This document shows positions 1,834 to 63,084 of a stretch of 64,000 bases of DNA, piece after piece. Under the pieces are notes generated by a model, which was not told the DNA's origin, ran no database searches, and saw nothing but the letters and a program-made list of their open reading frames with translations. The position numbers and the translations under genes are program-made. Each line of letters starts with the position of its first letter. The stretch's first letter is position 1. Source of the stretch: Mobula birostris (lineage: Eukaryota); the NCBI RefSeq assembly GCF_030028105.1, contig NC_092383.1, positions 98,417,604 through 98,481,603 on the forward strand, written 5' to 3'.

Positions 1834-2003
1834 CTCCACTTAATCATTGACAGGCTGAGAACCAGCTAGTTACTGAAATAATCTGATGTTTAACAAAATA
1901 AGTATGAATTAACTCCTACTAGTTTACTTGAATTTTTGTTGTACCATTTGGTTAAGTAACTCACCTGCTGACCGTCTGATTAATGTCGCCTGTCTTTGTC
2001 CAG

Positions 2004-8780
<6,777 letters not shown>

Positions 8781-9714: not shown

Positions 9715-9763
9715 ATGAAGGCTATTCTTGTCCTCATCTTCCTCTTCCACTCCTCCAGAGCTG
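9715..9763 (+). CDS. FCER1G: FCER1G exon 1 (signal peptide, 49 nt)
   Basis: gccATGa Kozak context; ..GCT G|gtaag donor, phase 1. Confidence 0.88.
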
Positions 9764-21700: not shown

Positions 21701-24123
21701 CCAGTTTACAATCAGGAGAGACCGACTGAAACATGTCGGACTTGTATGGAGAGGATGTTTCAGCTTGTGGGACATTCTGGCACCAGGAATCATTGGCTGA
21801 AAATATGGAGTGGGTGGTTTAAGTGGAAACGAGGCAGTTTTGTTTCTCTCTCTGAGGGTCGTGTACGTTTGGAACCCTCTTCCACGAAGAGGACGGCGTG
21901 GTAGTGTGGTGGTTAGCACAACGCTTTAGAGTATCGGCCGCCTGCGTTCAGTTCCTGCCGCTGTCGGTAAGGGGTTTGAACGTGACCGCGCAGCTTTCCT
22001 CCGGGTGCTCCGGTGTCCTCCCGCAGTCCAAAGACATGCCGGTTGGTAGGTGAATCGGTCATGGTAAATTGTCCCGTGATGAGGCTAGGGTAGAATCGGG
22101 AGCTAATGGTTAGTTGGCACGGCTCGAAGGGCCAGAAACGCCTTTTCCGCGCTGCTTCTCAATAATAAATACAAATGGCTGTGAAGCAGAGATTCTTTAG
22201 ATGATGGAGGTCGAGAGATTCTTCGTGAGAAGAGGCTGAAAGGTCACTGGTGCGAGGTGGAAATGTGGAGATGAGGTTACAGTGTGATCAGTTAGAGTGT
22301 CACGAAGCGTCGTGACCGAGCCTCGTCCTCCAGCTCCCACCGCCACCGCACGCGTTTGTGCATCATCCCTTCTCGCACGGTGACTGGTCTGTTAACTAAT
22401 CTTTTCCCCCACCTTCCTTTCCCATCTCACCCAGGTATTCTGCCAGAAACCCTATCACGTTCCGTTCAGCATACAGGCCTGAAGCTTCATCTCCTTTACT
22501 GCCACAGTACTGTGCCTCAGTGTGTACCATTGCCTTCACATCCACTAGACTCTCGCGCAGCTCCCTGCCATTCCGCATGGCCAGTGTGTTTTCCATCATT
22601 TCTGTCTCTGCCCTCCAAGGACGTGTCCAGTTTCCATATCCCAGTCCTGCTTCTCTCCCTTCTCGGTCTTTGCTCAGTTTCCCATCTCCCTGCCTTGGGT
22701 TTAAACTCTGCCATGGGGCATCAGCAAGCCCGTTCGTAAGGCTAGAAAGGGGCCACAGCCGGTTTGTCTCCGGAACGAGCCCCTTTGTCTAGTGCTGCCG
22801 TTCCTTGCAACAGAATCATCCTCACAATTTTCTCTCTCTGGGCAGCTGGACTGCGTGAGCCTGAGATTTGTTATGTGCTCGATGCGATACTCTTTGTCTA
22901 CGGGACGGTGTTAACGGCTCTGTACTGCCGTCTGAAGGTGAGTTACATTCCCATCAGCAGGGACACAGTCGGCGACACAGGGCGCTGGGGTTGAGGGTAT
23001 ACTGAAAGTTAGTGTGAGGGAGCTAGATTAATACCAATGGGGACACAGGCAGTGACACTGGGTGCTGTGGTTGAGGGACGCTGAAGGATAGTGTGAGGGA
23101 GCTGGATTAATATCAGTGGGACACTGGGTGCTGGGGGAGACGGGTTACTGGGGGACAGTGTGAGGGTATGAAGATGAGTTTCTCATTTGACTAACCTAAT
23201 ATGGGCTTTCGGGACACAATAGCCCAGACACAGAGTGTAAGCTCGGGGAGGGCTCGCTGGAACGAGATATTGGGAACAGTTCTGGGCACCACATTCCTGG
23301 AGTGACGGAGTCATTGGGAGAGGGTGGGGGACGTGAGTAGGGGAGTGAGGTGTTATGAGAATACTTCTGGTATTGGAATACTGTCACTGAGGAGAGATGG
23401 GAGAAGCTGGGGTTGTTTCTTCTGGAATATGGGAGGCAGGGGAAAGAGTGTGTGTGTGGGGGATGTAAAATAGTGAGTGGCTAGTTGGGAAAGAAGGGAA
23501 GGGCACAAACACACATACACAGAACAGACACACAGACACAGACACACAGACAGATACACAGACATACAAACACACACAGACACACACGCAAACACAGATA
23601 CACAGACATACAGACAGACAAACACACACAGATACACAGAACAGACACACAAACACACACAGACAGATACACAGACATACAGACACACAAACACACACAG
23701 ATACACAGAACAGACACACAAACACACACAGACAGATACACAGACATACAGACACACAAACACACACAGATACACAGAACAGACATACAAACACAGACAC
23801 ACAGATACACAGACATACAGACAGACAAACACACACAGATACACAGAACAGACACACAAACACACACAGACACACACGCAAACACAGATACACAGACACA
23901 GAAACACACAGATACACAGAACAGACACACAAACACACACAGACATACAGACACACAAACACAGACACGCAGACACACACACAAACACAGACACACAGAC
24001 AGACAAACACACACACATACAGAGACGTAGAGACAGACAGACAGAAACACACACACCACAGACATACAGACAGAAAGCAACACACAACACACACAACTAC
24101 ACCCCCCCCCAACGCACGCAAAG

Positions 24124-24157
<34 letters not shown>

Positions 24158-27100
24158 ACACACGGTGCGTGTAGGAAGGGTGTTTCCCCAGACTGTGGTG
24201 TCTAAGAAGAACAGTCTCAGAATGAGGTGTGGGCCCCTTCTGGACGGAGATGGGGAGAAATGCAGGGGGAGCATTCTCTCCCCCAGAGGCTGTGGGACTG
24301 CAATACCGAGGAGATTCAGGACAGACATCGCTGAGTATTAAGCAAACTGGGGGAAGGGAGTGGGATTTGTGCAAGAGGTGGTGCCGGGTTACGGATCATT
24401 CGTGGCTTTGTAAATGGAGCGGGGCATTCGTCCTTCCCACAATTACTTTATCTAAAGGGCCAGGCGGTGGGGAAGGTGCAAGGATGTTATACTTGAAAGA
24501 TAATTGAAACCTTTCTCAATCATTCACCGCAGATCTTGGATCGGAGGAAGGAGAAAGCAGCGGCCGGGCAGTCGGAGTACGAGGTTAGGCGGGAGCTGGG
24601 GTGACAGGGAGCGGGAAGGGAGAGCATCACCCGTGGGCAGGTGCTGGGGACGGAGCCCACGGCCCTGCACCGACATGAAATGGGTGGGAGGGTTAATCAA
24701 CTGAATTGGAGAACGGGCTATCCGTGATGTGAGGATGGGGAGAGGCTTTAAACCCTGCATGCCTAGAGGTTTCCTTAATATGTGTTTGTCGCTGTAGCAC
24801 CTGCGCATTGCAGCCACTGATGTCTATGAGGAGCTGAAAGGAGAGAAATCAGCTGGCCCCGGTGGGAAAAAGGTGAGTACTGCTCTGTCCTTGGAGTGTG
24901 TGATGGGATAGTCCAAAGGGAGATTCACTGTGTGTCTGATCCGTGTCCTGGGAGTGTGTGATGAGACAATGTAGGGGGAGATTCACTCTGTGTCTGACCC
25001 GTGTCCTGGGAGTGTGTGATGAGACAGTGCAGTGGGAGTTTCACTGTGTGTTTGACCCGTATCCTGGGAGTGTGTGATGGGACAGTGTAGAGGGAGTTTC
25101 ATTCTGTGTCTGACCCGTGTCCTGGGAGTGTGTGATGGGACAGTGTAGAGGGAGTTTCACTCTGTGTCTGACCTGTGTCCTGGAGTGTGTGATGGGACAG
25201 TGTAGAGCAGGATTCTTAACTTTTATGCCATGAACCCCTTTGCTAGTCCGGTGGATCCTATGTCCTCTTTTCAGAATAATGTATTTAAATATATAAAATA
25301 AAATACATAGAATTACAAAAAAAACGATTATATTAAAATAAAGTTATCAAAATATTAAAAGCACATCTGTGATACAGTAATATATGTCTTTCTTTATTAA
25401 AGCATTAAGTAACAAGACTATGCATTTGAAATATAGCCAGATTAAAATTAAATTTTATTTTTGAAGACATGTCAGTGTGAAGGCTGTTATTGCTTACTGG
25501 AATACGAACATTAAACTGTGGGCTGATCTTCGACAGAGTAACTCGTATGTCATTTTGGATATCCAACCGATTTAGGTTTCTTTTTGTTTTAATGTTTACA
25601 AGTGTTGAAAATCCTGATTCACAAAGATATGTCATTGCAAATGAAATTAAAGCTTCCATGGCTCGCTTTACAAGCCAAGAATAGGCTTCCCTCAAGGAAC
25701 AATTGACTTCTGCAAGGACTTTTGAGTTAAACTCCAATTGTAGTACGCTTTTTGTCCGTAGATCGATAATTTCATCTTTGGCTAGATCAACATCTTCGAT
25801 ACAGTTTACACCAGGAAGTAAAAGACTCCAGGTCTATGGTTGGGCTTCCATGCCATCAGGTTGGAAGTAACTTCTGAAAGAGTTCTGAAATGTTTCCGTG
25901 TCCTCAGACATTTCTTCAAAGGCGTTGACCGCTCCATCTTGGTGAAACACTTCCTCCAACATTTGAAAGTTTGCAAAGATGTTGGCGTCTACTCTCTTCT
26001 TCCATATCAGCAGCATTGCCCAGAACGCTGGTAATTTTTGAGTACCGTGCATAATGGTGGCTTCAGGACTTTGAACTGAAAGATTTATTTCATTCATGTG
26101 GTTAAAAATATCTGTCAGGTCAGCCAACCCACGGATACAATTCTTTGTGTTTCAACTTATTCCAAGAGTGGGTTTTCTTTTTTCAGAAAAGGTGAAGCTT
26201 TTGTCCTTAGTTCGAACAACAGCTTCAATACTTGTTCTTTGGAGAGCCAGCGAATTTCTGTGTGGTGGAGAAGCATTTCATATTCTACACCCATTTCTTG
26301 ACATAGTCTTTTTAAAATGCGATTATTCAGAGACCTGCTTCTAATAAAGTTGATGATGTTTATGGTCGTATTACAAAACTTCTTGCAGGATTGTCGGAAG
26401 AGTCTTTGTTGCCAGTGCATGTCATTGGGGGGCGCTGGAAGCGGACCCAACTGCAAGACACAGACATTGAAGTACTAGGGGCAGGACAAGGTTTATCAAG
26501 AAAGCAAGGGGAGTCAGGAAGAAACGACGCTGTACATGGACACAGGCCCTGGACGAGACTAAGATTCAGGGCCTGGGCTAGTACTTGGGCGAGAAGCACG
26601 GGACCCGGTCGTGGAACTAGGAACAAGGAGCCTGGACTAGGAACACGGAACTCCGGAACCAGAACCTGGGTCTTGACTCGGAACCGGAACCCGGGTCTAG
26701 GCTAGGACTCGGGACTAGGATCGTGGCAAGGACAGGACGTGGCTACAGGACTGGATGTGGAACTCCTGCACAGGACGAGAACACAAAGCCTTGACTTGGA
26801 CAGGACGAGGTTCTAGGACGTGGTTTGGGCTGGACCCCGGATCTAGGCGACGGCAAGACGTGGCTACAGGACAGGACGAGGTACCCCAGCACCGGGCTGG
26901 GCGAGGAACCGGAACGAGATGAGGACACGAAGCTCAGATTTGGACAAGGCTGGAACACAGCGCCTGGATTTGGTCTTGGAACACAGAGCCTTGGACTTGA
27001 ACGGGACGCTCAGAGCCTTGGACGTGGCTACAGGACTGGACGTGGAACATGGACAGGACGAGAACACAAAGCCGTGACCTGGACTGGACGAGGTTCTTGG

Positions 27101-30100
27101 ACGTGGCTTGGACTGGACGAGGGACTCTTGGACTGGACGAGAACACGAAGCCTTGACTTGGACAGGACTGGAACATGGCGCCTGGAACTTGAAACTTGGA
27201 ACACAGAACACAGAGCTGGGACTCCTCCTCGGGAATAGGATTTAGGGCCGGGGCTTTACACAGAGTCAGGGCCCGTCCTTGGGAACAGGACCCAGGACCG
27301 AGACTCTTTTTTGACACGGACACTACACACGGGGACACAAAGAGATAGTTCCAAACTCAACGATAGATAGTTCCTTATCTTGGCGTGGCAAGGCTCTAGT
27401 CTCACTCCGGTGGTTGAACTTGACAGGGATGCAGGCGAGGCTTCAGAAGGAAGGGGAAGGGAACAGTCCGCCGGGAATCCCTGGTTTGAGAGGTATTTAT
27501 GTACCAGCCCAAAACGAGAATCAGGTGCCTCGATTAAGGCACCCAATGGAACAAGGGAAAACAGGGCAAACCCGGAATACGGATCGATGGACGGGACCGT
27601 GAACCGGAGTGCGGATTTCATGGACCGGACCATGACAGTGCATGCCTGTGGAAAAACAATGAGTGACGAATGTGAGGAGCTTCTTTTTTCACTAAAGTAG
27701 CAAAACCATTGGTATTGTCAAGCATCGCAGGAGCTCCATCTTTGCAAAGAGTATGAAGTTTTTCTTTCCAGTCAAAGTTTTGTTTGGCAAATACTTTTTA
27801 CCGTTTCCAAATTCTTCTTTGATGGATTCAGCATGCGCTTAAAGAACAGAAACCAGGCGCTGACTGCATTGAGACATGTCTGTAATTTGATCTAGTTTCA
27901 TGCTGAATGGAACTTCCTCAAAGTCCTGCTTGAAAACGTTGAAATAAATATTAACTATTCTGGAAAGTATTGCGTTATTCGATAAGGGAACCACTTCTAG
28001 TTTCCTCCACACATTCTATCCGCTGTTCCAGTCCACAGACGAGCGCCACCATTTCGGGTGCATATGGCTTTACTACAGTCTATGCAATAGTGTTGGGGCT
28101 TTTTTTGTTTGGCAAGCCGGTAGCAACGTTGTAGGATAGTTCTAGAAAAAAGTTTTGGTGAAATAGTAAATCCAGGTTTGGAAGTGTCTCAACTTTTTCG
28201 AATCGAGTTTCCTTCGTTGGAAATTACCCACATCTTTAGAGGCATTTTCAGCACACCGTGGCTTTTGTGTCCCGTCACGTCCATTAAATCAATGAAACCA
28301 TATAATACCTGTACATAGTTTTTCTCATATTTCCCTTTTTTCGATATTTCACCTTAAATTGGGTTTGCAAAAGTATGACATCAATAAAGTTAAAATAGGA
28401 AATTCGTGTGCCAAATGTTGAAAAAGTTAAGTTTTAGAATTTATCCAAAGTTTGAATACTTTTCATGGATTTTAGATTCTCAGAATAACACAGGACTACG
28501 TGTTCTTCCGGGAATGAGGCTATTATTACGCATGGTTCTCATTTCTTATGTCGTTCGCAGCATTCTCGCGGTTATTTTAGGAAGTGCAGTACTTTCACAG
28601 CGTAATAATACACCAACACCACTTGCATAACACACGGCGCGTGGACGTCTTTACTTGAAAACACGGACAGTGAAAAAAGAAGCAAGTACGGCGAGAAAAC
28701 AAAAGATCCTCTGCTGCCGACAGAATTTACAGCACTGTGCATGACCTGTATCACTTTGCAATCTTTTAGCAATAACAAGACGTTACTTTAAATAACACTC
28801 TTCAGCAGTTACCTCAACCATCAGTCGTGTTTGAACTTGCCTGGGCGGCACTCGTAGCCCACGCGCCAGTTCGTATGACAAAAGGCCGTGCGAACTTTCG
28901 GAGAGTTAAAAAATCTCATTTGTCCTGTAAACACGAGGAATTCTGCAGATGCTGGAATTTCAAGCAACACACATCAAAGTTGCTGGTGAAGGCAGCAGGC
29001 CAGGCAGCATCTCTAGGAAGAGGTGCAGTCGACGTTTCAGGCCGAGACCCTTCGTCAGGACTAACTGAAGGAAGAGTGAGTAAGAGATTTGGAAGTGTGA
29101 GGGGGAGGGGGAGGGATGGAGCCAAGAGCTGGACAGATGATTGGCAAAAGGGATATGAGAGGATCATGGGACAGGAGGCCCAGGGAGAAGGAAAAGGGCG
29201 GGGGGGGGGAACCAGAGGGTGGGCAAGAGGTACATTCAGAGGGACAGAGGGAGAAAAAGGAGAGAGAGAGAAAGAATGTGCGTATATACATAAATAACGG
29301 ATGGGGTACGAGGGGGAGGTTGGGCATTAGCGGAAGTTAGAGATATCAATGTTCATGCCATCAGGTTGGAGGCTACCCAGACGGAATATAAGGTGTTGTT
29401 CCTCCAGCCTGAGTGTGGCTTCATCTTGACAGTAGAGGAGGCCGTGGATAGACATGTCAGAATGGGAATGGGACGTGGAATTAAAATGTGTGGCCACTGG
29501 GAGATCCTGCTTTCTCTGGTGGACACTCCCCCCCCCCCACCCCGCCTTGTCTTTCTCCTTGGGCCTCCTGTCCCATTGATCCTCTCATATCCCTTTTGCC
29601 AATCACCTGTCCAGCTCTTGGCTCCATCCCTCCCCCTCCTGTCTTCTCCTATCATTTTGGATCTCCCCCTCCCCTCCCACTTTCAAATCTCTTACTAGCT
29701 CTTCTTTCAATTGGTCCTGACGAAGGGTCACGTTCCGAAACGTCGACTGTACCTCTGCCTAGAGATGCTGCCTGGCCTGCTGCGGTCACCAGCAACTTTT
29801 ACGTGTGTCATTTGTACTGTACAGTTTTGCAAAAGTAATAAACAATAAAAAAATGACTCACCTCCTTCCACACTTTGATCAACAAACAATTTCAGATAGG
29901 GAATAATAGACAGCAACGTCGGTATCGGGGACACAAATGTGAGAACACGTGATTCACCGTCTGGTGGCGACAGGACTACCAGCCGATAGTTGGTCAGCTA
30001 CTTCGCACGGACGTCTGTGGTCAGGAAGACTGCGATCACGTTCCATCTCGCAGCGTTCTAAAAACTAACATAATGCCGAAGTAGCGATGAGAGTGTAGTA

Positions 30101-31574
30101 AACGATATTTCCCTAAATCTGTAACAACGGTAATATTATATAAAAATATCTGTGATTTCTATTGGTCACCGGTAGTGGTTTGTTGCCAACATTCGTAATT
30201 ATAGGAAATGCTGAGTTTCAGTTAGAGGTTAGTGAAAATAAAATATGTATTTTTTCCATCCAAGTTGAGTACCCTCTGGAATCTATCCCGTACGGATAGT
30301 TTATATCTATCTGATACAATAGGTCAGAGGTCTGATCTAACCCGCGCTCCGGGTGTGTGTGATGGGACAGTGTAGAGGGAGCTTCTCTCTGTGTCTGACC
30401 CGTGTCCTGGGAGTGTGTGACGGGACAGTGTAGAGGGAGTTTCACTCTGTGTCTGACCCGTGTCCTGGGAGTGTGTGATGGGACAGTGTAGAGGGCGTTT
30501 CACTCTGTGTCTGACCTGTGTCCTGGGAGTGTGTGATGCGACAGTGTAGAGGGAGCTTCACTCTGTGTCTGACCCGTGTCCTGGGAGTGTGTGATGGGTC
30601 AGTGTAGAGGGAGTTTCACTCTGTGTCTGACCCGTGTCCTGGGAGTGTGTGATGGGACAGTGTAGAGGGAGCTTCACTCTGTGTCTGATCCGTGTCTTGG
30701 GAGTGTGTGATGGGCCAGTGTAGAGGGAGCTTCACTCTGTGTCTGACCCGTGTCCTGGGAGTGTGTGATGGGACAGTGTAGAGGGAGCTTCAGTCTGTGT
30801 CTGATCCGTGTCTTGGGAGTGTGTGATGGGCCAGTGTAGAGGGAGCTTCACTCTGTGTCTGACCCGTGTCCTGGGAGTGTGTGATGGGGCATGGTTTGTT
30901 GTTACAATAATATTTCTAACGTTTACCCTCCATCTCTTTTCTCTGCAGAAAGAAGAGGGTGTTTACACGGTATGGGCACCTGTTTCTCTACACTCTCCAT
31001 CTTTCCTTCACTTTTTGTTTCTTTCTAGTCTTTCTGTTACTATTTTCCTTTTTCTCTCACTCTTTATTTTTAATTTTGGAAGTCTCGTTCTGTGTTTCCC
31101 ACACTCTTTCTCTCCGTTTAGTCCGTCTCTGCCGGTGTCTCTAAATTTATCTCTAATTCACGCTTTTTCTCAGAGTTGCCCTTCCCAATCTCTCTCCCCA
31201 TCTACCTCTTCCCTCTCTATTTCTCCCTGGTTCTCCCATCCTCTCCCTGTCCCCATGAACCCTCACTCCTCCCTCTTCCTCTCACATTATTTCTTTATTT
31301 TCATCTCTCATTGTCACCCTTTCGCCTTTTCCTCCTCTCCAGCCCGGTGTATCTACCTCGTCTATTTTTCTCACTCCATCTTTCTCACACTCCTCGCTGT
31401 CTCTCCCTCTCTTCCTCTTCACCATCTCTCTCCCTTGCTCCCCTCCTCATTCAGAATCTCCTTTCCTCTCAGTTTATGTGTAACCTCCCTCTCTCTGTCT
31501 GCTTGCAGGGCCTGGGCGAACACCACATTGATACCTATGAATCTCTGCAGCAGAAAGCTCCCAGGAAGATGTAG
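9715..31574 (+). CDS. FCER1G: High-affinity Ig Fc receptor gamma subunit (FcR gamma), 5 exons, 100 aa
   Basis: Exons 9715-9763, 22846-22937, 24798-24872, 30949-30969, 31509-31574 give [102 protein letters not shown] Cys/Asp present; ITAM YTGL-x7-YESL; 49/92/21-nt exon sizes as I recall for human; adjacent to NDUFS2. Confidence 0.95.
11017..11974 (-). mobile_element. Rex1/Babar-like LINE, RT C-terminal part
   Basis: Minus [32 protein letters not shown]; [13 protein letters not shown]; short-repeat tail at ~11017. Confidence 0.82.
12214..13225 (-). mobile_element. Second Rex1/Babar-like LINE fragment inside an antisense CR1
   Basis: Minus [33 protein letters not shown]; tail AGAATCAAGTTTA at the left end. 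Confidence 0.75.
13226..14345 (-). mobile_element. CR1 RT fragment (antisense)
   Basis: Continues the CR1 segment at ~11975-12213; MEFFEELT and QWI/DF..AFD-like remnants. Confidence 0.75.
13647..13843. mobile_element. Penelope-like fold-back insertion, hammerhead core decayed
   Basis: Inverted arms ~13647-13713 / 13744-13807; TSD ATCCACTGAA at 13637-13646 and 13844-13853. Confidence 0.75.
14346..15066 (+). mobile_element. CR1 3' fragment, decayed
   Basis: RT C-terminal remnants; tail TGTCTTATGGTCTTAT. Confidence 0.75.
15775..16265 (+). mobile_element. Old LINE RT C-terminal remnant
   Basis: [24 protein letters not shown], typical of a non-LTR RT C-terminus. Confidence 0.6.
16636..18900 (-). 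mobile_element. hAT (Buster/Charlie-type) transposon remnant with transposase fragments
   Basis: TIR CAGTGGTTCCCAAAC at 16636 preceded by cccTAcac; minus fragments [29 protein letters not shown]-terminal HQAHPSH*; right end not found. Confidence 0.82.
18100..18252 (+). mobile_element. Short CR1 3' end inserted in the hAT
   Basis: Near-identical to 1685-1833. Confidence 0.85.
19060..19610 (+). mobile_element. Rex1/Babar-like LINE 3' fragment
   Basis: [31 protein letters not shown] in shifted frames; tail AATAAACTTGAAC. Confidence 0.72.
20135..21170 (+). mobile_element. 5'-truncated CR1, RT C-terminal half largely intact
   Basis: [26 protein letters not shown]; single stop at 20670-20672. 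Confidence 0.93.
21891..22175 (+). mobile_element. tRNA-derived V-SINE (HE1-like)
   Basis: A-box-like TAGTGTGGTGG 21902, B-box-like GTTCAGTTCC 21946, V-domain TTTCCTCCGGGTGCTCCGGTGTCCTCCCGCAGTCCAAAGAC, A-rich tail. Confidence 0.8.
22846..22937 (+). CDS. FCER1G: FCER1G exon 2 (TM, 92 nt)
   Basis: cag|CT..AAG|gtgag; [27 protein letters not shown]. Confidence 0.97.
23510..24160 (+). repeat. Compound CA-rich microsatellite with ~60-bp higher-order units
   Basis: (CA)n/ACAG/GATA mosaics; GATACACAGAACAGACACACAAACACACACAG recurs. Confidence 0.95.
24798..24872 (+). CDS. FCER1G: FCER1G exon 3 (75 nt)
   Basis: tag|CAC..AAG|gtgagt, phase 0-0; RIAATDVYE aligns with human RKAAITSYE. Confidence 0.82.
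24885..25207 (+). repeat. 58-bp minisatellite array (left half)
   Basis: ~5.5 units starting just after the exon 3 donor. Confidence 0.92.
26420..27637 (-). mobile_element. Solo LTR (TGTCA..TGACA) with 5-bp TSD
   Basis: TSD GTGCA at 26415-26419 and 27638-27642; internal GGAC-rich short repeats. Confidence 0.85.
29026..29063 (-). ncRNA. Minimal type I hammerhead ribozyme motif, intact
   Basis: UAGUC-CUGACGA-AGG(gucucgg)CCU-GAAA-CGUC^GACUG; stem I fully paired; palindromic ACGU stem III. Confidence 0.75.
29712..29749 (+). ncRNA. Minimal type I hammerhead ribozyme motif, core intact, sense to FCER1G
   Basis: UGGUC-CUGACGA-A GGG(ucacgu)UCC-GAAA-CGUC^GACUG; stems pair with G-U wobbles. Confidence 0.7.
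30335..30888 (+). repeat. 58-bp minisatellite array (right half, ~9 units)
   Basis: Same unit and orientation as 24885-25207; ends ~60 nt before exon 4. Confidence 0.93.
30949..30969 (+). CDS. FCER1G: FCER1G exon 4 (21 nt)
   Basis: Long pyrimidine tract, cag|AAA..ACG|gtatg; KEEGVYT (human KSDGVYT). Confidence 0.92.
31509..31574 (+). CDS. FCER1G: FCER1G exon 5 (66 nt incl. TAG)
   Basis: cag|GGC CTG..ATG TAG; [21 protein letters not shown]. Confidence 0.93.
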   Translation, partial: GLGEHHIDTYESLQQKAPRKM

Positions 31575-32006
31575 TGATGATGCTGATCTCCTGGGTTCGG
31601 GGGCAGGGGTGGGGGTGGGGGGTGGGGAGGTTTGGCTGTGGGAGGGTGAGGGTGGGGTAACAGAGTCACCCAGTCTTTGTCACTGTCAAGGCTGTGAATG
31701 TCCACAGCATGTCACTATGGTAATCCTTTGCCGTCCTCATGTCCATGAGGTCATTCAGCCCATCGAGACTGGGGCAGGGAGAGCAGGAGCTAATGCAGTC
31801 CCTCCATATGTGGAGGGGGTCAGGTTGAGGTGAAGGGGAATGCAGGACTGGGGTATCTGGGTGTGGTGTTTAAGATCTGCATGGGTGGGTGAGGAACACT
31901 TTGAATCGTTGAAGCTGCAGGTGAGCTATTTGTGGCCAAACATCTCGGCCAGCAACCAGACGCTTCACTTGTTCATTGCTTTATTCTCAGTGGGTTCATT
32001 ATGTGC

Positions 32007-32012
32007 AATAAA
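32007..32012 (+). terminator. Candidate FCER1G polyadenylation signal
   Basis: First AATAAA after the stop; a second lies at 32192-32197. Confidence 0.55.
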
Positions 32013-32072
32013 TTTGGTTGAAGTGAGGTCTGGTGTCAATATTTTCATGGCTTCAGTCAGGCTGGGAGTTAC

Positions 32073-32981: not shown

Positions 32982-35900
32982 CCCATATACCCTGTTTGAG
33001 TACTGTTGGGGGGGATCAGCTTACCGGGGGGAAGCGACAGTGGCCATGCCTCCGGTACAGAGTCCGGCCCTGTATCTCAGAAGGGTAGGGAAAGGAAGAG
33101 GAGGGCAGTAGTAATAGGGGACTCAATAGTAAGGGTGTCAGATCGGTGATTCTGTGGACGCAGTCCAGAGACCCAGATGTTAGTTTGCCTCCTTGGTGCC
33201 AGGGTCCGGGATATTTCTGATTGTGTCCAAGATATCCTGAAGTGGGAGGGAGAGGAGCCAGAGGTCGTGGTGCATATAGGTACCAATGAGATAAGTAGGA
33301 AAAGGGAAGAGGTCCTGAAAGGAGAATATAGGGAGTTAGGAAGGGACTTGAGAAAAAGGACCACAAAGGTAGTAATCTCAGGATTACTACCTGTGCCACA
33401 TGACAGTGAGAGTAGGAATGCGATGAGCTGGAGGATAAATGCGTGGCTGAGGGATTGGAGCAGGGGGCAGGGATTCAAGTTTTTGGATCATTGGGACCTC
33501 TTTTGGCGCAGGTGTGACCTGTACAAAAAGGACGGGTTACACTTGAATCCTAGGGGGACCGATATCCTGGCGGGGAGATTTGTGAGGGCTACTGAGGTGA
33601 CTTTAAACTAGAATGGTTGGGGGGTGGGAATCAAATTAAAGAGACTAGGAGAGAGGAGGTTAGTTCACAACAGGGGGATGGGAACAAGTGCAGAGAGACA
33701 GAGGGATGTAAAATGAGGGTAGAAGCAAAAAGTAGTAAAGTGAAAAGTAAAAGTGGCAGGCCGGCAAATCCAGGGCAAAAATCAAAAAAGGCCACTTTTC
33801 AGCATAATTGTACAAGGGCTAAGAGTGTTGTAAAAGCGAGCCTGAAGGCTTTGTGTATCAATGCAAGGAGCATTCGTAACAAGGTGGATGAATTAAAAGT
33901 GCAGATTGGTATTAATGATTATGATATAGTTGGGATCACAGAGACATGGCTCCAGGGTGACCAGGGATGGGAGCTCAACATTCAGGGATATTCAATATTC
34001 AGGAGGGATAGACATGAAAGAAAAGGAGGTGGGGTAGCATTGCTGGTTAGAGAGGAGATTAACGCAATAGAAAGGAAGGACATTAGCCAGGAGGATGTGG
34101 AATCGATATGGGTAGAGCTGCATAACACTAAGGGGCAGAAAACGCCGGTGGGAGTTGTGTACAGGCCACCTAACAGTAGTAGTGAGGTTGGGGATGGTAT
34201 TAAACAGGAAATTAGAAATGCGTGCAATAAAGGAACAGCAGTTATAATGGGTGACTTCAATCTACATATAGATTGGGTGAACCAAATTGGTAAGGGTGCT
34301 GAGGAAGAGGATTTCTTGGAATGTATGCGGGATGGTTTTTTGAACCAACATGTCGAGGAACCAACTAGACAGCAGGGTATTCTAGACTGGGTATTGAGCA
34401 ATGAGGAAGGGTTAATTAGCAATCTTGTCGTGAGAGGCCCCTTGGGTAAGAGTAACCATAATATGGTGGAATTCTTCATTAAGATGGAGAGTGACATAGT
34501 TAATTCAGAAACAAAGGTTCTGAACTTTAGGGCAACTTTGAAGGTATGAGATGTGAATTAGCTAAGATAGACTGGCAATTGACACTTAAAGGGTTGACGG
34601 TGGATATGCAATGGCAAGCATTTAAAGATTGCTTGGATGAACTACAACAATTGTTCATCCCAGTTTGGCAAAAGAATAAATCAGGGAAGGTAGTGCACCC
34701 ATGGCTGACAAGGGAAATTAGGGATAGTATCAATTCCAAAGAAGCAGCATACAAATTAGCCACAAATGGTGGCTCACCTGAGGAATGGGAGAAATTCAGA
34801 GTCCAGTGGAGGAAGACAAAGGGCTTAATTAGGAAAGGGAAAAAAGATTATGAGAGAACACTGGCAGGGAACAAAAACTGACTGTGAAAGCTTTTATAGA
34901 TATGTGAAAAGAAAAAAGATTGGTTAAGACAAATGTAGGTCCCCTACAGACAGAAACAGGTGAATTGATTATGGGGAGCAAGGACATGGCAGACCAATTG
35001 AATAACTACTTTGGTTCTGTCTTCACCAAGGAGGACATAAATAATCTTCCAGAAATAGTAGGGGACAGAGGGTCCAGTGAGATGGAGGAACTGAGGGAAA
35101 TACATATTAGTAGGGAAGTGGTGCTAGGTAAATTGAAGGGATTAAAGGCAGACAAATTCCCAGGGCCAGCTGGTCTGCATCCCAGAGTGCTTAAGCCAGT
35201 AGCCCAAGAAATAGTGGATGCATTAGTGATAATTTTTCAAAACTCTTTAGATTCTGGATTAGTTCCTGAGGATTGGAGGGTGGCTAATGTAACCCTGCTT
35301 TTTTTAAAAAAGGAAGAGAAACCAGGGAATTATAGACTAGTTAGCCTAACATTGGTGGTGGGGAAAATGCTAGAGTCAGTTATCAAAGATGTGATAACAG
35401 CACATTTGGAAAGCAGTGAAATCAGACAGTCAGCATGGAGTTGTGAAAGGAAAATCATGTCTGACAAATCTTATTGTCACAATGGCAGGGCATTGGGAGC
35501 AAGGGTGGACCCAAATGCAAGACACATCTTGCGAGGTTACTTAGATTTAGTTTATTGTTTGATACCAGGAGAGCTAGGCAGGAGCAGGAGCAGTGAACTT
35601 GACAAGGACTGAGGACTACAACTAAGCTGGGACCAAGAGTCTGGGCTTGGACTCAGAATCAGCTCCCAGAACTAGAGGAGACACGAAGAGGCTAGGGTAT
35701 GGACTCCAAGCCCAAGACTGGGCAAGGACCCCAGAACCAGGCATGGACATGACATGGGCTAGGGAGAGGAGGAACATGGAAACAGAGCCTCAGTCTCAGG
35801 GAGCAGGTACATGGAACCATGGACACATACACAGAACAAGTCAGGACCCCTCCTTGGGTACAGAACATAGGGCCAGGACTCTCACACAGAAGAGAGTAGG

Positions 35901-44134: not shown

Positions 44135-46525
44135 AATCTCTTGGCGTTACGAATGTCAGAAACAGCGAAAAGTAAGATACAAGCTGGAATAGGTAAAGAA
44201 CAATGTGGTTTTGTGAAAGACAAAGGTACAAGAAACGCAATATTGATGTTAAGGATACTATTAGAACGAGCTTTTCAAGTGCAAAAGGATTTGTTTGTTT
44301 TATCGACTACACAAAAGTCAAGTCAAGTCACTTTTGTTGCCATTTCAGCCATAACTGCTGGTACAGAACACAGTAAAAATGAGACAACGTTTTCAAGACC
44401 ATGGTGCTACCTGAAACAATACAAAAACTACACTGGACTGTGTAAAACAACACAAAAACTACACTAGACTACAGTCCTATCCAGGACTGCATAAAGTGCA
44501 CAAAACAGTGCAGGAATTACAATAAATAATAAACAAGACAGTACGAACAGTAGAGGGTATACCAGGTTGGTGCCAGTCCAGGGTCTGGGTACTGAGAAGT
44601 CTGATGGCTTGGGGGAAGAAACTGTTACATAGTCTGGTCGTGACAGCCCGAATGCTTTGGTGCCTTTTTCCATATGGCAGGAGGGAGAAGAGTTTATATG
44701 AGGGGTGCGCGGGGTCCTTCACAATGCTGTTTGCTTTACGGATGCAGCGTGCGGTGTAAATGTCTGTGATGGCGGGAAGAGAGACCCCGATGATCTTCTC
44801 AGCTGTCCTCACTATCCACTGCAGGGTCTTGCAATCCGAGATGGTGCAATTTCCGAACCAGGCAGTGATGCAGCTGGTCAAGATGCTCTCGATACAACCT
44901 CTGTAGAATGTGGTGAGGATGGGGGGTGGGAAATGGACTTTTCTCAGCCTTCGCAGGAAGTAGAGACGCTGTTGGCTTTCTTTGCTATGGAGCTGGTGTT
45001 GAGGGACCAGGTGAGATTCTCCGCCAGGTGAACACCAAGAAATTCGGTGCTCTCAACGATTTCTACCGAGGAGTCGTCGATGTTCAGCGGAGAGTGGTAG
45101 CTCCGTGTCCTCCTGAAGTCAACAACCATTTCTTTTGTTTTGTTCACATTCAGAGACAGGTTGATGGCTCTGCACCAGTCCGTTAGCCGCTGCACCTCCT
45201 CTCTGTATGCTGACTCATCGCTCTTGCTGATGAGACCCACCACGGTCGTGTCATCGGCGAACTTGATGATGTGGTTCGAGCTGTGTGTTGCAGCACAGTC
45301 GTGGGTCAGCAGAGTGAACAGCAGTGGACTGAGCACACAGCCCTGGGGTGCCCCCGTGCTCAGTGTGATGGTGTTGGAGATGCTGCTTCCAATCCGGACT
45401 GACCGAGGTCTCCCAGTCAGGAAGTCTAGGATCCAGGTGCAGAGGGAGGTGTTCAGGCCCAGTATTTGATAAAGTGAAGCTCAGTAACTTATTTGAAATA
45501 TTACAGAAAACTCGAGATCTAGATTCGAGAGACCTTCTCCTAATCAGAAATCTGTACTGGGAACAAACTGCCGCTGTAAGAATAGATGGAGAAGTGAGTC
45601 AGTTTACAAAAATCAAGAGAGGCGTTAGACAAGGGTGTGTTTTCTCCCCTGATTTATTTAATGTGTACAGTGAAACAATATTACAAAAAATAAGAGACAT
45701 CTTGGGAATCAAAGTTGGCGGTGAAAACATCATTAATATCAGATATGCAGATGACACTGTGTTAGTTACAAGTATGGAGGAAGAACTACAAAACTTAATT
45801 GATATAATTGTTGAAGAAAGTGCAAAAATGGGTCTATCTATCAATTGCAAAAAGACAGAATGTATGGTGATATCCAGAAAGAAGGAGTATCCTATCTGCA
45901 GACTGGAAATGAACGGGGAAGACATAAAACAAGTAAAGAACTTTTGCTACTTAGGAAGCTGGGTGACGTCAGATGGCAGGTGCGACATGGACATCAAAAG
46001 AAGAATAGGGATGGCAAAAGGCATCTTTATGAGAATGAAGAGTATACTGACCAATACTAAACTAGGCATGACAACCAGCCTCAGAGTACTGAAACGTTTA
46101 TCCAGTTATGTAATATTGCTCAGAATGTTGGACAATATCTAGTAACATGAGGAAACGAATTGAAGCAGCACAGATGTGGTTCTTGAGGAGGATGCAAAGA
46201 ATATCATAGACGAAACGACTATCTAACGAGGATTTCATGAACAGAGCAAACACGAAAAGAGAAATAATGTATGAGATCATGAAAAGGCAACGTAACTTCA
46301 TTGGACATGTGATTAGGAAAGAGGAGTTAGAATGCACGGTAATTATGAGAAAGATTGAAGGGAAGAAAGCAAGAGGAAGGCAAAGACAAATGATGATGGA
46401 GACAACATCCAGAGAACTGAAAATGAATACCAATGAATTGATCCACTTGACCCGAAACAGGAGTGTGTGGGCCATGGCAAAGCTGAAACTGGGCACGGCA
46501 CCTGATGATGTTAATGATGATATAG
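44135..46525 (+). mobile_element. 5'-truncated RTE-clade LINE
   Basis: EQCGFVKDKGTRNAI, GVRQGCVFSPDLFN, RYADDTVL, FCYLGS; (GAT)n tail ~46503-46521. Confidence 0.88.
44317..45463 (-). mobile_element. Rex1/Babar-like LINE inserted in the RTE
   Basis: [33 protein letters not shown]; (GACTT)n tail; splits host FIDYTKAFDKV. Confidence 0.88.
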
Positions 46526-51500: not shown

Positions 51501-54266
51501 CATTTTCTGCCTAGTCCCACTGACCTGCACACGGACCATATCCCTCCATACACCTCCCATCCATGTATCTGTCCAATTTATTCTTAAATGTTAAAAAAGA
51601 ACCCGCATTTACCACCTCGTCTGGCAGCTCATTCCATACTCCCACCACTCTCTGTGTGAAGAAGCCCTTCCTAATGTTCCCTTTAAATTTTTCCCCCTTC
51701 ACCCTTAACCCATGTCCTCTGTTTTTTTTCTCCGCTTGCCTCAGTGGAAAAAGCCTGCTTGCATTCATTCTATCCATACACGTCATAATTTTATATACCC
51801 TCTATCAAATCTCCCCTCATTCTTCTACGCTCAGGGAATAAAGTCCTAACCTATTCAACCTTTCTCTGTAACTCAGTTTCTCAAATCCCGGCAACATCCT
51901 TGTAAACCTTCTCTGCACTCTTTCAACCTTATTTATATCCTTCTGTAATTTGGTGACCAAAACTGAACACAATACTCCAGATTCGGCCTCACCAATGCCT
52001 TATACAACCTCATCATAACATTCCAGCTCTTACACTCAGAACTTTGATTAATAAAGGCCAATGTACCAAAAGCTCTCTTTATGACCCTATCTACCTGTGA
52101 CACCACTTTTAGGGAAATTTGTATCTGTATTCCCAGATCTCTCTGTTCCACTGCACTCCTCAGTGCCTTACCGTTTACCCTGTATGCTCTACCTTGGTTT
52201 GTCCTTCCAAAGTGCAATACCTCACACTTGTCTGTATTAAACTCCATCTGCCATTTTTCAGCCCATTTTTCCAGCTGGTCCATATCCCTCTACAAGCTTT
52301 GAAAACCTTCCTCACTGTCCACTACACCTCGAATCTTTGTACCAACAGCAAATTTGCTGATCCAATTTACCACATTATCATCCAGATCATTGATATAGAT
52401 GACAAATAACAATGGACCCAGCACTGATCCCTGTGGCACACCACTAGTCACAGGCCTCCACTCTGAGAAGCAATCCTCTACTACCACTCTTTGGTTTCTT
52501 CCATTGAGCCAATGTCTAATCCAATTTACCACCTCTCCATGTATACCTAGCGACTGAATTTTCCTAACTAACCTCCCATGCGGAACCTTGTCAAAGGCCT
52601 TACTGAAGTCCATGTAGACAACATCCACTGCCTTCCCTTCATCCACTTTCCTGGTAACCTCCTCGAAAAACTCCAATAGATTGGTCAAACATGACCTACC
52701 ACGCACAAAGCCATGTTGACTCTCCCTAATAAGTCCCTGGCTATCCAAATGCTTGTAGATCCTGTCTCTTAGTACTCCCTCCAATACCGACGTCAAACGT
52801 ACCGGCCTATAATTTCCTGGATTACTTTTCGATGCTTTTTTAAACAACGGAACAACATGAGCCACTCTCCAATCCTCTGGCACTTCACCCGTTGACACCA
52901 ACATTTTAAATATATCTGCCAGGACCCCTGCAATTTCAACACTAGTCTCCTTCAAGGTCCGAGGGAACACCCTGTCAGGTCCTGGGGATTTATCCATTTT
53001 AATTTTCCTCAAGACAGCAAGCACCTCCTCCTTTTCAATTTGTACAGTATCCATGATCTCACTACTTGTTTCCCTTAATTCCATAGACTTCATGCCAGTT
53101 TCCTTAGTAAATACAGATTCAAATAAAACATTTAAGATCTCCCCCATTTCTTTTGGTTCCGCACAAAGCCGACCACTCTGATCTTCAAGAGGACCAGTTT
53201 TATCCCTTACAATCCTTTTGCTCTTAATATACCTGTAAAAACTCTTTGGATTATCCTTCACTTTGGTACATCTTTTACAATGTAAGCGATGCACCTACCA
53301 AAGAGACCATCTGTTCCAGTGAGGTACTTCACAAACAACTTTCTCTTCAAGTCAAACACTCCCGCGATTAAATCTGGCCGATCATTTGGTGGCTGATGCC
53401 AAAAAAGATGCTGTCGGATTTCGGGCCAGTTTGGATTGCATGTCATTGTAATGAACAATGAGGCGTTACCATACTTCCGTATATACATCTTGGAGTCCTG
53501 ACATCGTTCCATCTCGTATCTCGGTCCGACAAATGTTGAGGAGAGGATGATGCACCTTCCGATGTTTCTGAAATCATCGTCATCATTCAATGTATCAGTC
53601 AGGCCTCTGTATGTTGTTGATCTCAAGGTTGCTTGATTCCTTTAGCTCAGCCTCTCGCCTTCAATCTTAGCAGCCATACCGACCAGGTATTGTTGGAATA
53701 GATGTCCTCCTTTGAGAAGGTAATTAAACTCATTCTCATGGTTCATTATTCGATATGAATAATAACGCATTGCCGTCAGTTTCTTCTTGTTCGTCATTCG
53801 GAGTTGATAATGCCAGCCATCGTCTCCAAGTGGAAAGAAAAGTACGCATTGAAAACTGTCATATGAGCGATGGGACTCTGAGATTATTTGCAAATCAGCT
53901 GCTCGTTCTTTCAACACAATGTGCCGTGATCTTACTTCAGGTTCGGTGCTGTTCGGTATAATGACAGTGACTTCGTTGGCAATTTGTGCATTAAATCTCC
54001 TCTCACGTTCAAATGCCGGTCTCCGGTCAGGATCAGTGAGAATGGACGCCTCTGGCATGCCTCGAATTTGTTCTTTTGCAAGTTGAAGGGATGTAATGTA
54101 CGGGTTTCGTTGTCATGGTAGGTTTTCCAATAATTCAACAATCTCACGTTGAGTTCCATCATTCTGGGGTATCCCCATTATCAATTCCACGCTGTCTTGA
54201 GGATCCATGAAGTAAATTTGAAGGAATAGGGCTTGCTGGTTGGGGTCTGGCATTAAATGTCCGATG
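48592..54266 (-). mobile_element. Decayed Helitron (Rep-PIF1 helicase), 5' end missing
   Basis: LQIYFMD, HRSYDSFQCVLFFPLGDDGW, FQQYLV, LFITMTCNPNWPEI, IEYQKRGLPHLH, IKYTMKG, DAPEGMSKT, GLPPHKLELKRG..CNGTR, FAMTIHKAQGQT, HGQLYVAL; stop 48724-48726; candidate 3' CTAG at 48592-48595. Confidence 0.92.
51437..53275 (-). mobile_element. 5'-truncated CR1 inserted in Helitron Rep
   Basis: 334-aa RT ORF 52290-53294; tail TAGAAACCATAGAAAC at 51437. Confidence 0.93.
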
Positions 54267-61058: not shown

Positions 61059-61370
61059 CGGTGCCCCTGGACAACACTCCCGGGCGGGGTTGTTCTCTTG
61101 CCGGAGCGTCTCTCTGCGTTGCCGCCTCCCGTATCTCTGGTGATAGGCGCACCGCTCTACACTCGCTCTCTGCTGGAGCCTTCACGGTCCTAGCCCGGGC
61201 GAACGGAGGCGGCCGATCACAGGATCCCGCAGGAGTCCACCGGCTGGGCTCCGATCACCGTCACGGAGCAAGTGAGAGTCCGCAGCTGGTTAACGGATCA
61301 CCGTCACGGAGCGAAGATGAAGCCCTTCCTGGTTGCGCTGCTTTTGTCGGAGGAAGCCAGGGTGAGTTAC
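61059..61370 (+). promoter_or_regulatory. CpG island / probable promoter and first exon of an unidentified gene
   Basis: Dense CpG, GGGCGG box at ~61083, non-repetitive sequence, consensus donor CAGG|GTGAGT at 61361/61362. Confidence 0.65.
61317..61361 (+). CDS. Candidate first coding exon MKPFLVALLLSEEAR (unidentified gene)
   Basis: gaagATGa, 45 nt, phase-0 donor; no downstream exon found in the window; could be 5' UTR. Confidence 0.4.
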
Positions 61371-61374
61371 TGTT

Positions 61375-62375
61375 GCTTCCCCTTCCCCACACGCCCCTAC
61401 GCTACTCCGTACCTGCCCCTATTCTTCACCGTCCCGGGCCCTTCCCCTTCCCCAGTCCGTCCCCACCCTACACCGACCCGGGCCCTTCCCCTTCCCCACT
61501 CCGTCCCCACCCTACACCGTCCCGGACCCTTCCCCTTCCCCACTCCGTCCCCACCCTACACCGTCCCGGGCCCTTCCCCTTCCCCACTCCATCCCACCCT
61601 ACACCGTCCCGGGCCCTTCCCCTTCCCGTTCCCCTTCCCTACTCCGTCCCCATCCTACACCACCCCGGGCCCTTCCCCTTCCCCACTCCGTCCCCACGCT
61701 ACTCCATCCCGGGCCCTTCCCCTTCCCCACTCCGTCCCCACCCTACACTGTCCCGGACCCTTCCCTTTCCCCACTCCGTCCCCACCCTACACCGTCCTGG
61801 GCCCTTCCCCTTCCCTTTCCCCTTCCCCTTCCCCACTCCGACCCCACCCTATACCATCCTGGGCCCTTCCCCTTCCCCTTCCCCACTCTGTCCCCACCCT
61901 ACACCGTCCCGGGCCCTTCCACTTCCCCACTCCAACCCCACCCTACACCGTCCTGGGCCCTTCCCCTTCTCCTGCCCCCCTCCGTCCCCATCCTACACCG
62001 TCCCGGGTCCTTCCCCTTCCCCACTCCATCCGACCCTACACCGTCCCGGGTCCTTCCCCTTCCCCACTCCATCCGACCCTACACCGTCCCGGGCCCTTCC
62101 CCTTCCCCACTCCATCCCACCCTACACCGTCCCGGGCCCTTCCCCTTCCCCACTCCATCCCACCCTACACTGTCCCGGGCCCTTCCCCTTCCCCTTCCCC
62201 CCTCTGTCCCCACCCTACTCTGTCCTGGGCCCTTCCCCTTCCCCTTCCCGACTCCGACCCACCCTACACCGTCCCGGGCCCTTCCCCTTCCCCACTCCGA
62301 CCCATCCTACACCGTCCCGGGCCCTTCCCCTTCCCCACTCCATCCCCACCCTACACCGTCCTGAGCCCTTCCCCT
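61375..62375 (+). repeat. C-rich ~43-50-bp minisatellite (~22 units)
   Basis: Unit CACCGTCCCGGGCCCTTCCCCTTCCCCACTCCRTCCCCACCCTA with variable CTTCCC copy number. Confidence 0.95.
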
Positions 62376-63084
62376 TCCTGTTCCCTACATTATCTCTGCT
62401 CTTCTCTCCCTCCGCTCCTTCCCCCGTTCTACAACCGTCCCTGTCCCTCCTCTAAGTCTCCTGGTACCCGGACCACCACCAGAGCCCGGTCCCGAAACTT
62501 GTCGGCCCTAATACCCACCAACTCCGAGGACACCCACCCCTCCCCAGCTACCGAGGAACAAGCTGTGGGATCGCCATCAGATTCTGGCCCTGAATACCGT
62601 CTGTACCCCTTGGGACGGCTCAGGTCATGCTGATCCATGGTGATTCACTGCTGAACGTCCCGCCTGTTATTGCAGCCTCAGCCCCGATAGAGTCATACAG
62701 CTCTGAAAAAGGCCCTTTGACCCAACTGGTCCATGCTGACCACAGCACACTCTCTGCTTGTCCCAGTGCCTGTGACCCTCCAAGACCCTCCATGTACCTA
62801 TCCACATGCCCCTTTCTGTTGCAATGGTACTCGCCTGAACTGCTGTTCATTCTATCCTGATGGAGTCAGCCCCCACTCACCTCCAAGGACACCTGTATTC
62901 CTCTCTGCCACTCTGACAGCTTCTACCCTCCAGAGCTGTGTGGGGAAGGAGTCCTGGGGTTTAGAGCCAGAGGTGACGAGGGACCTGCGATATACTTTAA
63001 GGTCAGCTGTGGAATTTGTTAGTGAGCCTCTGGGAGCTTCCCTGAGTTCCCTGCCCCTGACCACCAGAGTGGCTGTCAAAGCAA

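Follow-up and report, generated by a model that had tools for sequence, protein, structure and literature searches.

An expressed six-exon FcR gamma gene with two tyrosine-based activation motifs in the mobulid ray Mobula birostris

Introduction

In mammals and teleosts, the gene for the gamma chain of Fc receptors (FcR gamma, FCER1G) has five exons and its product carries a single activation motif of the immunoreceptor tyrosine-based type (ITAM) (PMC4536121). The gene of Xenopus laevis has six exons; the additional exon gives a second ITAM, which was first described in 2003 and has been called 'a unique feature of X. laevis FcRgamma' (Guselnikov et al. 2015, PMC4536121). This additional ITAM is split in its first tyrosine module, and classical ITAMs as a rule have a phase-0 intron behind position +1 from their first tyrosine (PMC4536121). 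In cartilaginous fish, the gamma chain has been reported to be absent (Akula et al. 2014, PMC4016189; Hellman et al. 2017, PMC5742104). Here we describe a stretch of 64,000 nucleotides from the mobulid ray Mobula birostris (contig NC_092383.1, positions 98,417,604 to 98,481,603 of the forward strand; hereafter the window, numbered from its first letter), which contains the complete coding region of an FcR gamma gene of the FCER1G type, coding for a type I membrane adaptor.

The ray FcR gamma is a two-ITAM adaptor, in which the fourth of six exons encodes the second half of the membrane-proximal motif (ITAM1). The two-ITAM design is known from Xenopus, and elasmobranch models are already predicted in public annotation; in the literature that we searched, which was a limited library, we found no description of a two-ITAM gamma chain in cartilaginous fish.

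Splicing of the ray gene

The splicing pattern was read from RNA contigs (Logan) that were found with probes from the window and placed on positions 22600-25100; they come from four runs and two species. The contigs of one run (X1) have no letter that differs from the window, which makes it the same species; the runs X5, X6 and X8 are from a close relative, whose contigs match the window throughout exon 2 and differ from it at 5 letters of exon 4. A GT..AG joint connects position 22937 to 24533 in four runs out of four (contig depth 2861, 740, 247 and 259 in X1, X5, X6 and X8, respectively), and a second one connects 24583 to 24798 in X1, X5 and X8 (3419, 357 and 259). The loose end of the contigs before exon 2 consists of the last 29 letters of exon 1 (X1, X5 and X6). 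Behind position 24872, the loose end consists of the 21 letters of exon 5 and then the first 9 letters of exon 6 (X1, X5 and X8); the junction between 24872 and 30949 is thus known from these letters and not from direct placement. In X1, the depth is 2000-5800 over the exons, compared to 35-86 over the introns. The runs had first been tagged as possible DNA with a mostly intronic probe, a possibility that we rejected, since the spliced joints show that they are RNA in which pre-mRNA coverage is low. The RNA joins all six exons in the order 1-2-3-4-5-6, and the segment 24798-24872 is exon 4 of a six-exon mRNA.

A previous reading of the window, made from the letters alone (the sequence-only reading), had taken this segment for an enlarged exon 3 in a gene of five exons, which would add a lone YxxL to the tail. 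The segment itself was described correctly: it has 75 nt, phase 0-0 and AG/GT splice sites, and its 25-residue peptide is exactly as quoted; exon 5 (30949-30969) and the last exon (31509-31574) are also at the places that this reading implied, and the junction 24872-30949 that it proposed to look for agrees with the letters that run from exon 4 into exons 5 and 6. What it overlooked is a 51-nt exon at 24533-24583, which is the true counterpart of the human-type exon 3 (given as 36 nt in that reading), and the segment 24798-24872 is the additional exon. The exon 24798-24872 is all that speaks for the five-exon model. Against it, the joint 22937-24798, which this model needs, is not among the best-supported joints listed for the four runs, where the RNA passes through 24533-24583 instead, and the peptide of exon 3 is present in all batoid proteins; we give next to no chance to this model.

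Position of the exons

All exons are on the forward strand, and the six coding exons span about 22 kb of the window. The coding part of exon 1 (9715-9763) comprises the start codon and the signal peptide, 16 codons plus one base, and ends with the donor G/GTAAGT (here and below, the slash marks the exon border). Its local alignment to batoid signal peptides has a score of 75, compared to a background of at most 32, and the signal peptide that it encodes is the same as in Mobula hypostoma. It is located 13 kb upstream of exon 2. Two other candidates for exon 1, at about 21516 and 22578, were excluded based on their reading phase or their weak donors. A run of 144 N at 7308-7451, 2.3 kb upstream of exon 1, is either an assembly gap or masked sequence.

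Exon 2 (22846-22937), which is supported by its sequence, a Pfam match and an RNA joint, encodes a short extracellular stub with the putative dimerising cysteine, the transmembrane segment with its aspartate, and the start of the tail. A query with the open frame around this exon returned the FcR gamma proteins of three batoids, of 116-117 aa, which have 17 residues between ...CRLK and HLR...; these residues, which are outside the sequence-only model, are the peptide of exon 3. Exon 3 (24533-24583) was located by a tblastn search of the window with batoid FcR gamma. It has phase 0-0, is flanked by the acceptor caccgcag and the donor gttagg, has RNA joints on both sides, and ends in ...SEYE, so that its 3' end contributes the first two residues of ITAM1 (YE). 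Exon 4 (24798-24872) is preceded by ...cgctgtag, with its AG acceptor, and followed by the donor GTGAGT; its 25 residues complete ITAM1 and continue into a linker. Exon 5 (30949-30969) is only 21 nt long, encodes KEEGVYT, and its last two codons give the YT that opens the second motif (ITAM2), which is completed by the coding part of exon 6 (31509-31574; 21 residues and a TAG stop codon). When joined, the six exons give an in-frame coding sequence of 354 nt, which corresponds to 117 aa. The 3' untranslated region probably covers 31575-32030, a region with a putative 3' end and with an AATAAA signal at 32007-32012; the RNA runs X1 and X2 contain 0.60-0.62 of the words sampled from 31509-32030.

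Several repeats were observed in and around the gene. Intron 2 contains a CA-rich array (23504-24163) in which a period of 4 is nested in a 69-bp unit present in 7.7 copies, and which yields spurious ORFs of 240-310 aa on both strands. An array of a 58-bp unit (24886-25207, 5.6 copies, 89% matches) begins 14 bases past exon 4, and similar units are found near 30800-30890. The depth of the RNA contigs over this array is 10^4-10^5, far exceeding that of the FcR gamma exons, so the 58-bp unit belongs to a repeat family with abundant transcription throughout the genome. Elsewhere in the window, LINE fragments with reverse-transcriptase/endonuclease ORFs are present at 42-704, 33617-34549 and 45474-46142 (forward strand) and at 52290-53294 (reverse strand), and two forward-strand ORFs (464 and 453 aa) overlap each other in different frames at 61061-62633; they have no Pfam match and may be low-complexity sequence.

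The two ITAMs of the tail

The junction of exons 3 and 4 reads YE/HL-x7-YEEL, which is a canonical ITAM (Yxx[LI]-x7-Yxx[LI]), and that of exons 5 and 6 gives ITAM2, YT/GL-x7-YESL. In each motif, a phase-0 intron separates the first tyrosine and its following residue from the rest. The YEEL of ITAM1 is 17 residues ahead of YTGL, a distance that the sequence-only reading had given correctly; the same reading concluded that the chain was a '1.5-ITAM' adaptor, a conclusion that has to be abandoned, because YEEL closes a full ITAM begun in exon 3. ITAM1 is beyond chance, since the 41 proteins of this layout described below all keep both its tyrosines, and all but one of them have a glutamate right behind the first; its spacer is of 7 residues throughout. 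For ITAM2 of the Mobula orthologue, the Pfam ITAM model scores 22.1 bits, slightly below its cut-off of 22.2, and it does not match exon 4 alone. Both ITAMs are canonical and conserved, and their motifs suggest that they are putative docking sites for Syk or ZAP-70.

A gamma chain rather than a zeta chain

The translation of exon 2 matches the Pfam family PF11628 (TCR_zetazeta) with an E-value of 2.7e-15 and 56 bits (cut-off 25). The ectodomain is very short, and the stub cysteine (C25) and the transmembrane aspartate (D29) are invariant in both family alignments. The window protein is 96.6% identical to the FcR gamma of M. hypostoma, and its transmembrane segment is near-identical to that of tetrapod and teleost gamma chains. 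A maximum-likelihood tree was built from 34 chains of the gamma, gamma-like, zeta and zeta-like types; it groups the window protein with the batoids within gamma (support 93/79) and splits gamma and gamma-like chains from zeta at 94/85. CD3 zeta is defined by three ITAMs, eight exons and a transmembrane segment and tail of the zeta type; the ray chain has two ITAMs, six exons and a transmembrane segment of the gamma type. Nor is the ray gene a shortened zeta, because the chimaera Callorhinchus milii has both a three-ITAM zeta and a separate gamma-type chain. As judged from its transmembrane segment and from the tree, the ray chain is of the gamma type and not zeta, and the name FcR gamma given by the sequence-only reading is supported by the Pfam match, the identity to the M. 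hypostoma protein and the tree.

It could be argued that the gene is a paralogue of the zeta/gamma family, zeta-like or gamma-like, which has kept two ITAMs and is not the orthologue of FCER1G: the assignment to gamma is based on sequence and on the tree, several elasmobranch models are named 'gamma-like' by NCBI, and gamma-like and zeta-like paralogues exist in teleosts. However, the teleost gamma-like and zeta-like chains branch elsewhere in the tree, where the ray protein goes with gamma, the transmembrane segment is nearly that of tetrapod and teleost gamma, and no more than one gamma-type gene per elasmobranch species was found. We consider a paralogue to be very improbable.

Comparison with known FcR gamma chains

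With the mammalian and teleost FCER1G products, the ray chain shares the signal peptide, the stub cysteine, the transmembrane aspartate and the C-terminal YTGL-x7-YE[ST]L (the human chain is in PDB entries 8ywa and 8y81). Those genes, unlike that of the ray, have no counterpart of 24798-24872. In human FCER1G, ...SYE is directly followed by KSDGVYTGL, which is equivalent to a ray chain from which exon 4 has been skipped (...SEYE/KEEGVYTGL).

The resemblance to the FcR gamma of X. laevis and X. tropicalis is closer. These genes also have six exons instead of five, a membrane-proximal second ITAM with an exon border in its first tyrosine module, and a transmembrane segment of the gamma type, and the first module is YEHL, as in the ray. 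The differences are in the motif next to the transmembrane segment (CRLK in the ray, CHLK in Xenopus) and in the linker that follows ITAM1. While the additional ITAM was published as unique to X. laevis, we find it in the ray, where it is backed by RNA, in nine more elasmobranchs and in all three orders of amphibians. The published statement that cartilaginous fish have no gamma chain is wrong, given the RNA-supported ray gene and the RefSeq models of ten species.

Distribution of the two-ITAM chain

The distribution was surveyed by a profile search with two-ITAM members, followed by a motif scan of the matches. The layout with ITAM1 and ITAM2 is present in 41 gamma-type proteins, from 10 elasmobranchs (five batoids, including that of the window, and five sharks), 4 caecilians, 3 salamanders (Ambystoma, Pleurodeles and a sequence near Pleurodeles, which we take as a salamander) and about 24 frogs, which range from Ascaphus to Xenopus, Bufo and Rana. 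A single ITAM is present in bichir, teleosts, coelacanth, squamates, turtles, crocodilians, birds and mammals. The sequence-only reading made its proposal depend on the conservation of YEEL and GGK in other cartilaginous fish, and the two parts had different fates: the second half of ITAM1 is kept as Yxx[LI] in all elasmobranchs sampled, but the GGK of the linker is confined to rays and skates, sharks having ...RKEMPK at that position. The gamma-type chain of Callorhinchus (V9LFN2, annotated as 'ITAM-bearing signaling subunit') has the same layout, over 116 aa.

Many one-ITAM chains keep ...YE immediately ahead of [KT]xxG[IV]YTGL; this is so in coelacanth, lizards, snakes, turtles, alligator and human. 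The ray sequence without exon 4 would read ...SEYE/KEEGVYT, which is the same layout. Isoforms without exon 4 are predicted (RefSeq) in the catshark Scyliorhinus torazame, the caecilian Geotrypetes and the newt Lissotriton, and the members of each pair differ by precisely that cassette; in the caecilian, the pair of isoforms X1/X2 defines a cassette of 25 aa. The proposal of the sequence-only reading that skipping the exon would be in frame and give a one-ITAM isoform is consistent with the phase 0-0 and with these predicted isoforms.

Two database models depart from the layout. That of Rhincodon typus (147 aa) has unrelated residues straight after ...EEGIYT, and the X2 model of the X. laevis L homeolog (92 aa) has unrelated residues between ITAM1 and the position of ITAM2; both look like intron read-through introduced by automated annotation, and not like genuine variants.

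Comparison with CD3 zeta

CD3 zeta belongs to the same Pfam family as the ray chain (human zeta is in PDB entry 6jxr). We mapped the zeta of Callorhinchus on its genomic locus, where all exons have phase 0: exon 3 (69 nt) ends in YQ/, exon 4 (81 nt) reads TL...YSSL...AGAGKR, exon 5 (48 nt) ends in YT/, exon 6 has 57 nt, exon 7 (36 nt) ends in YQ/, and exon 8, the last coding exon, reads GLSS...TYDSL. Each of the three ITAMs is therefore split in phase 0 at the same point as in ray gamma, behind position +1 from the first tyrosine. Exons 3, 4, 5 and 6 of the ray gene correspond to zeta exons 3, 4, 5 or 7, and 8, respectively. In particular, the 75-nt exon 4 of the ray (HL...YEEL...GPGGKK) is matched by zeta exon 4, where the second half of the first zeta ITAM is followed by a linker ending in G-x-G-K-[KR]. 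The exon plan of ray gamma matches that of CD3 zeta minus the middle ITAM.

An hhalign comparison of gamma with zeta agrees with this correspondence: with a probability of 99.6%, it pairs gamma ITAM1 with the first ITAM of zeta and gamma ITAM2 with the third, and skips the second. When the tail only is aligned to human zeta with HMMER, the E-value is 0.1-0.8, which is not significant on its own, so the support for the parallel comes from the exon plan and from the profile comparison. The sequence-only reading had likened the segment 24798-24872 to a half-ITAM exon of CD247, the zeta gene. The likeness stands as far as position, phase and rough content are concerned, zeta exon 4 being the exon in question; the match of residues which that reading had given is reproduced by HMMER but is not significant. 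The analogy with zeta is thus sound in terms of exon architecture and weak in terms of residues. CD3 zeta differs from ray gamma in having three ITAMs, eight exons and its own transmembrane segment and start of the tail; in chondrichthyans the two chains have separate genes, and zeta forms a branch apart from gamma in the tree.

Origin of exon 4

The presence of the two-ITAM chain in elasmobranchs and in all three amphibian orders suggests that the six-exon, two-ITAM FcR gamma is probably the ancestral form in jawed vertebrates; exon 4 would then have been lost in ray-finned fishes, coelacanth and amniotes. A more detailed scenario, for which we see somewhat better than even odds, is that this ancestral gamma stands between zeta and mammalian gamma, that the 75-nt cassette was lost repeatedly, that the YE of the human ...SYEK... 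is the remnant of a half-ITAM, and that the phase 0-0 of the exon permits a splicing switch between one and two ITAMs.

Alternatively, the ancestor had one ITAM, and elasmobranchs and amphibians gained the extra ITAM exon separately, for instance through duplication of an exon or conversion from CD3 zeta. Such convergence would be in line with the single ITAM of bichir, teleosts, coelacanth and every amniote sampled, and Guselnikov et al. (PMC4536121) referred to the Xenopus exon as an 'emergence'. However, the intron has the same position and phase in elasmobranchs and amphibians (outside the window species, exon borders are taken from the X1/X2 isoform pairs and the Xenopus paper), the spacer has 7 residues everywhere, the exon encodes 25 aa in the ray as in the caecilian, and residues are shared, namely the YE in 40 of the 41 proteins and K-[QD]-[IV]-Y ahead of the second tyrosine. 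In addition, the lineages that lack the exon have the leftover YE at the position that matches the end of ray exon 3, a position defined at the protein level. Convergence therefore appears unlikely to us.

We give a probability of about 0.85 to the overall explanation, according to which the window gene is an expressed, six-exon FcR gamma of 117 aa with two ITAMs, representing the ancestral form of jawed vertebrates and signalling by analogy with known chains. Several points weigh against it. To account for the patchy distribution, exon 4 must have been lost independently three times or more. In Callorhinchus, ITAM1 has a degenerate first half (YGI-E, one residue short; the YDEI half and ITAM2 are canonical), and in Narcine this half reads YEQM. 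No host neighbour gene is found among the ten largest ORFs of the window, which are LINE reverse-transcriptase/endonuclease ORFs or Pfam-negative. All the signalling steps proposed below are by analogy with FcR gamma and CD3 zeta. Last, contig depth gives no rate of inclusion of exon 4, and only the best-supported joints are listed.

This last point bears on the idea that exon 4 is a minor cassette and that the chief product in the ray is a one-ITAM chain like that of mammals. The phase 0-0 of the exon would allow it, and isoforms that lack exon 4 are predicted in the three species named above. But in X1, the contigs that include exon 4 are as deep as the joint between exons 2 and 3 (3419 vs 2861), and a loose end of the type 24583>30949 is absent from the loose ends listed for the four runs and two species. 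It is therefore very improbable that exon 4 is a minor cassette, and we retain the two-ITAM chain as the product of the ray gene; a minor form that skips exon 4 may exist alongside, which is compatible with the contig data.

Proposed signalling mechanism

By analogy, the cysteine of the stub would link the ray chain into a disulfide dimer, and the transmembrane aspartate would pair it with ligand-binding receptors that have a basic residue in their transmembrane segment. Src-family kinases would phosphorylate the ITAMs, and each doubly phosphorylated ITAM would dock the tandem SH2 domains of Syk or ZAP-70. The dimer would present four docking units, compared to two in mammals, which would make the signal stronger or more graded, as is thought to be the case for the three ITAMs of zeta.

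Significance

The interest of these observations is chiefly evolutionary, in addition to the correction of published statements. The gene model is corrected, in that the ray chain has a complete second ITAM and not a stray half-motif. The expression of FcR gamma in a cartilaginous fish is shown by RNA, against widely cited surveys (PMC4016189, PMC5742104), which raises the question of which receptors use the gamma chain in rays, where classical Fc receptors are reported to be absent. The two-ITAM gamma chain, published as a Xenopus oddity, is common to sharks, rays and all amphibian orders, and this distribution points to an ancestral adaptor that was richer in ITAMs and was later simplified in the lineage that leads to human. 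The chains with one, two and three ITAMs form a natural series built on homologous exons, in which the relation between ITAM number and signalling may be studied, a matter that is also relevant to the design of chimeric antigen receptors.

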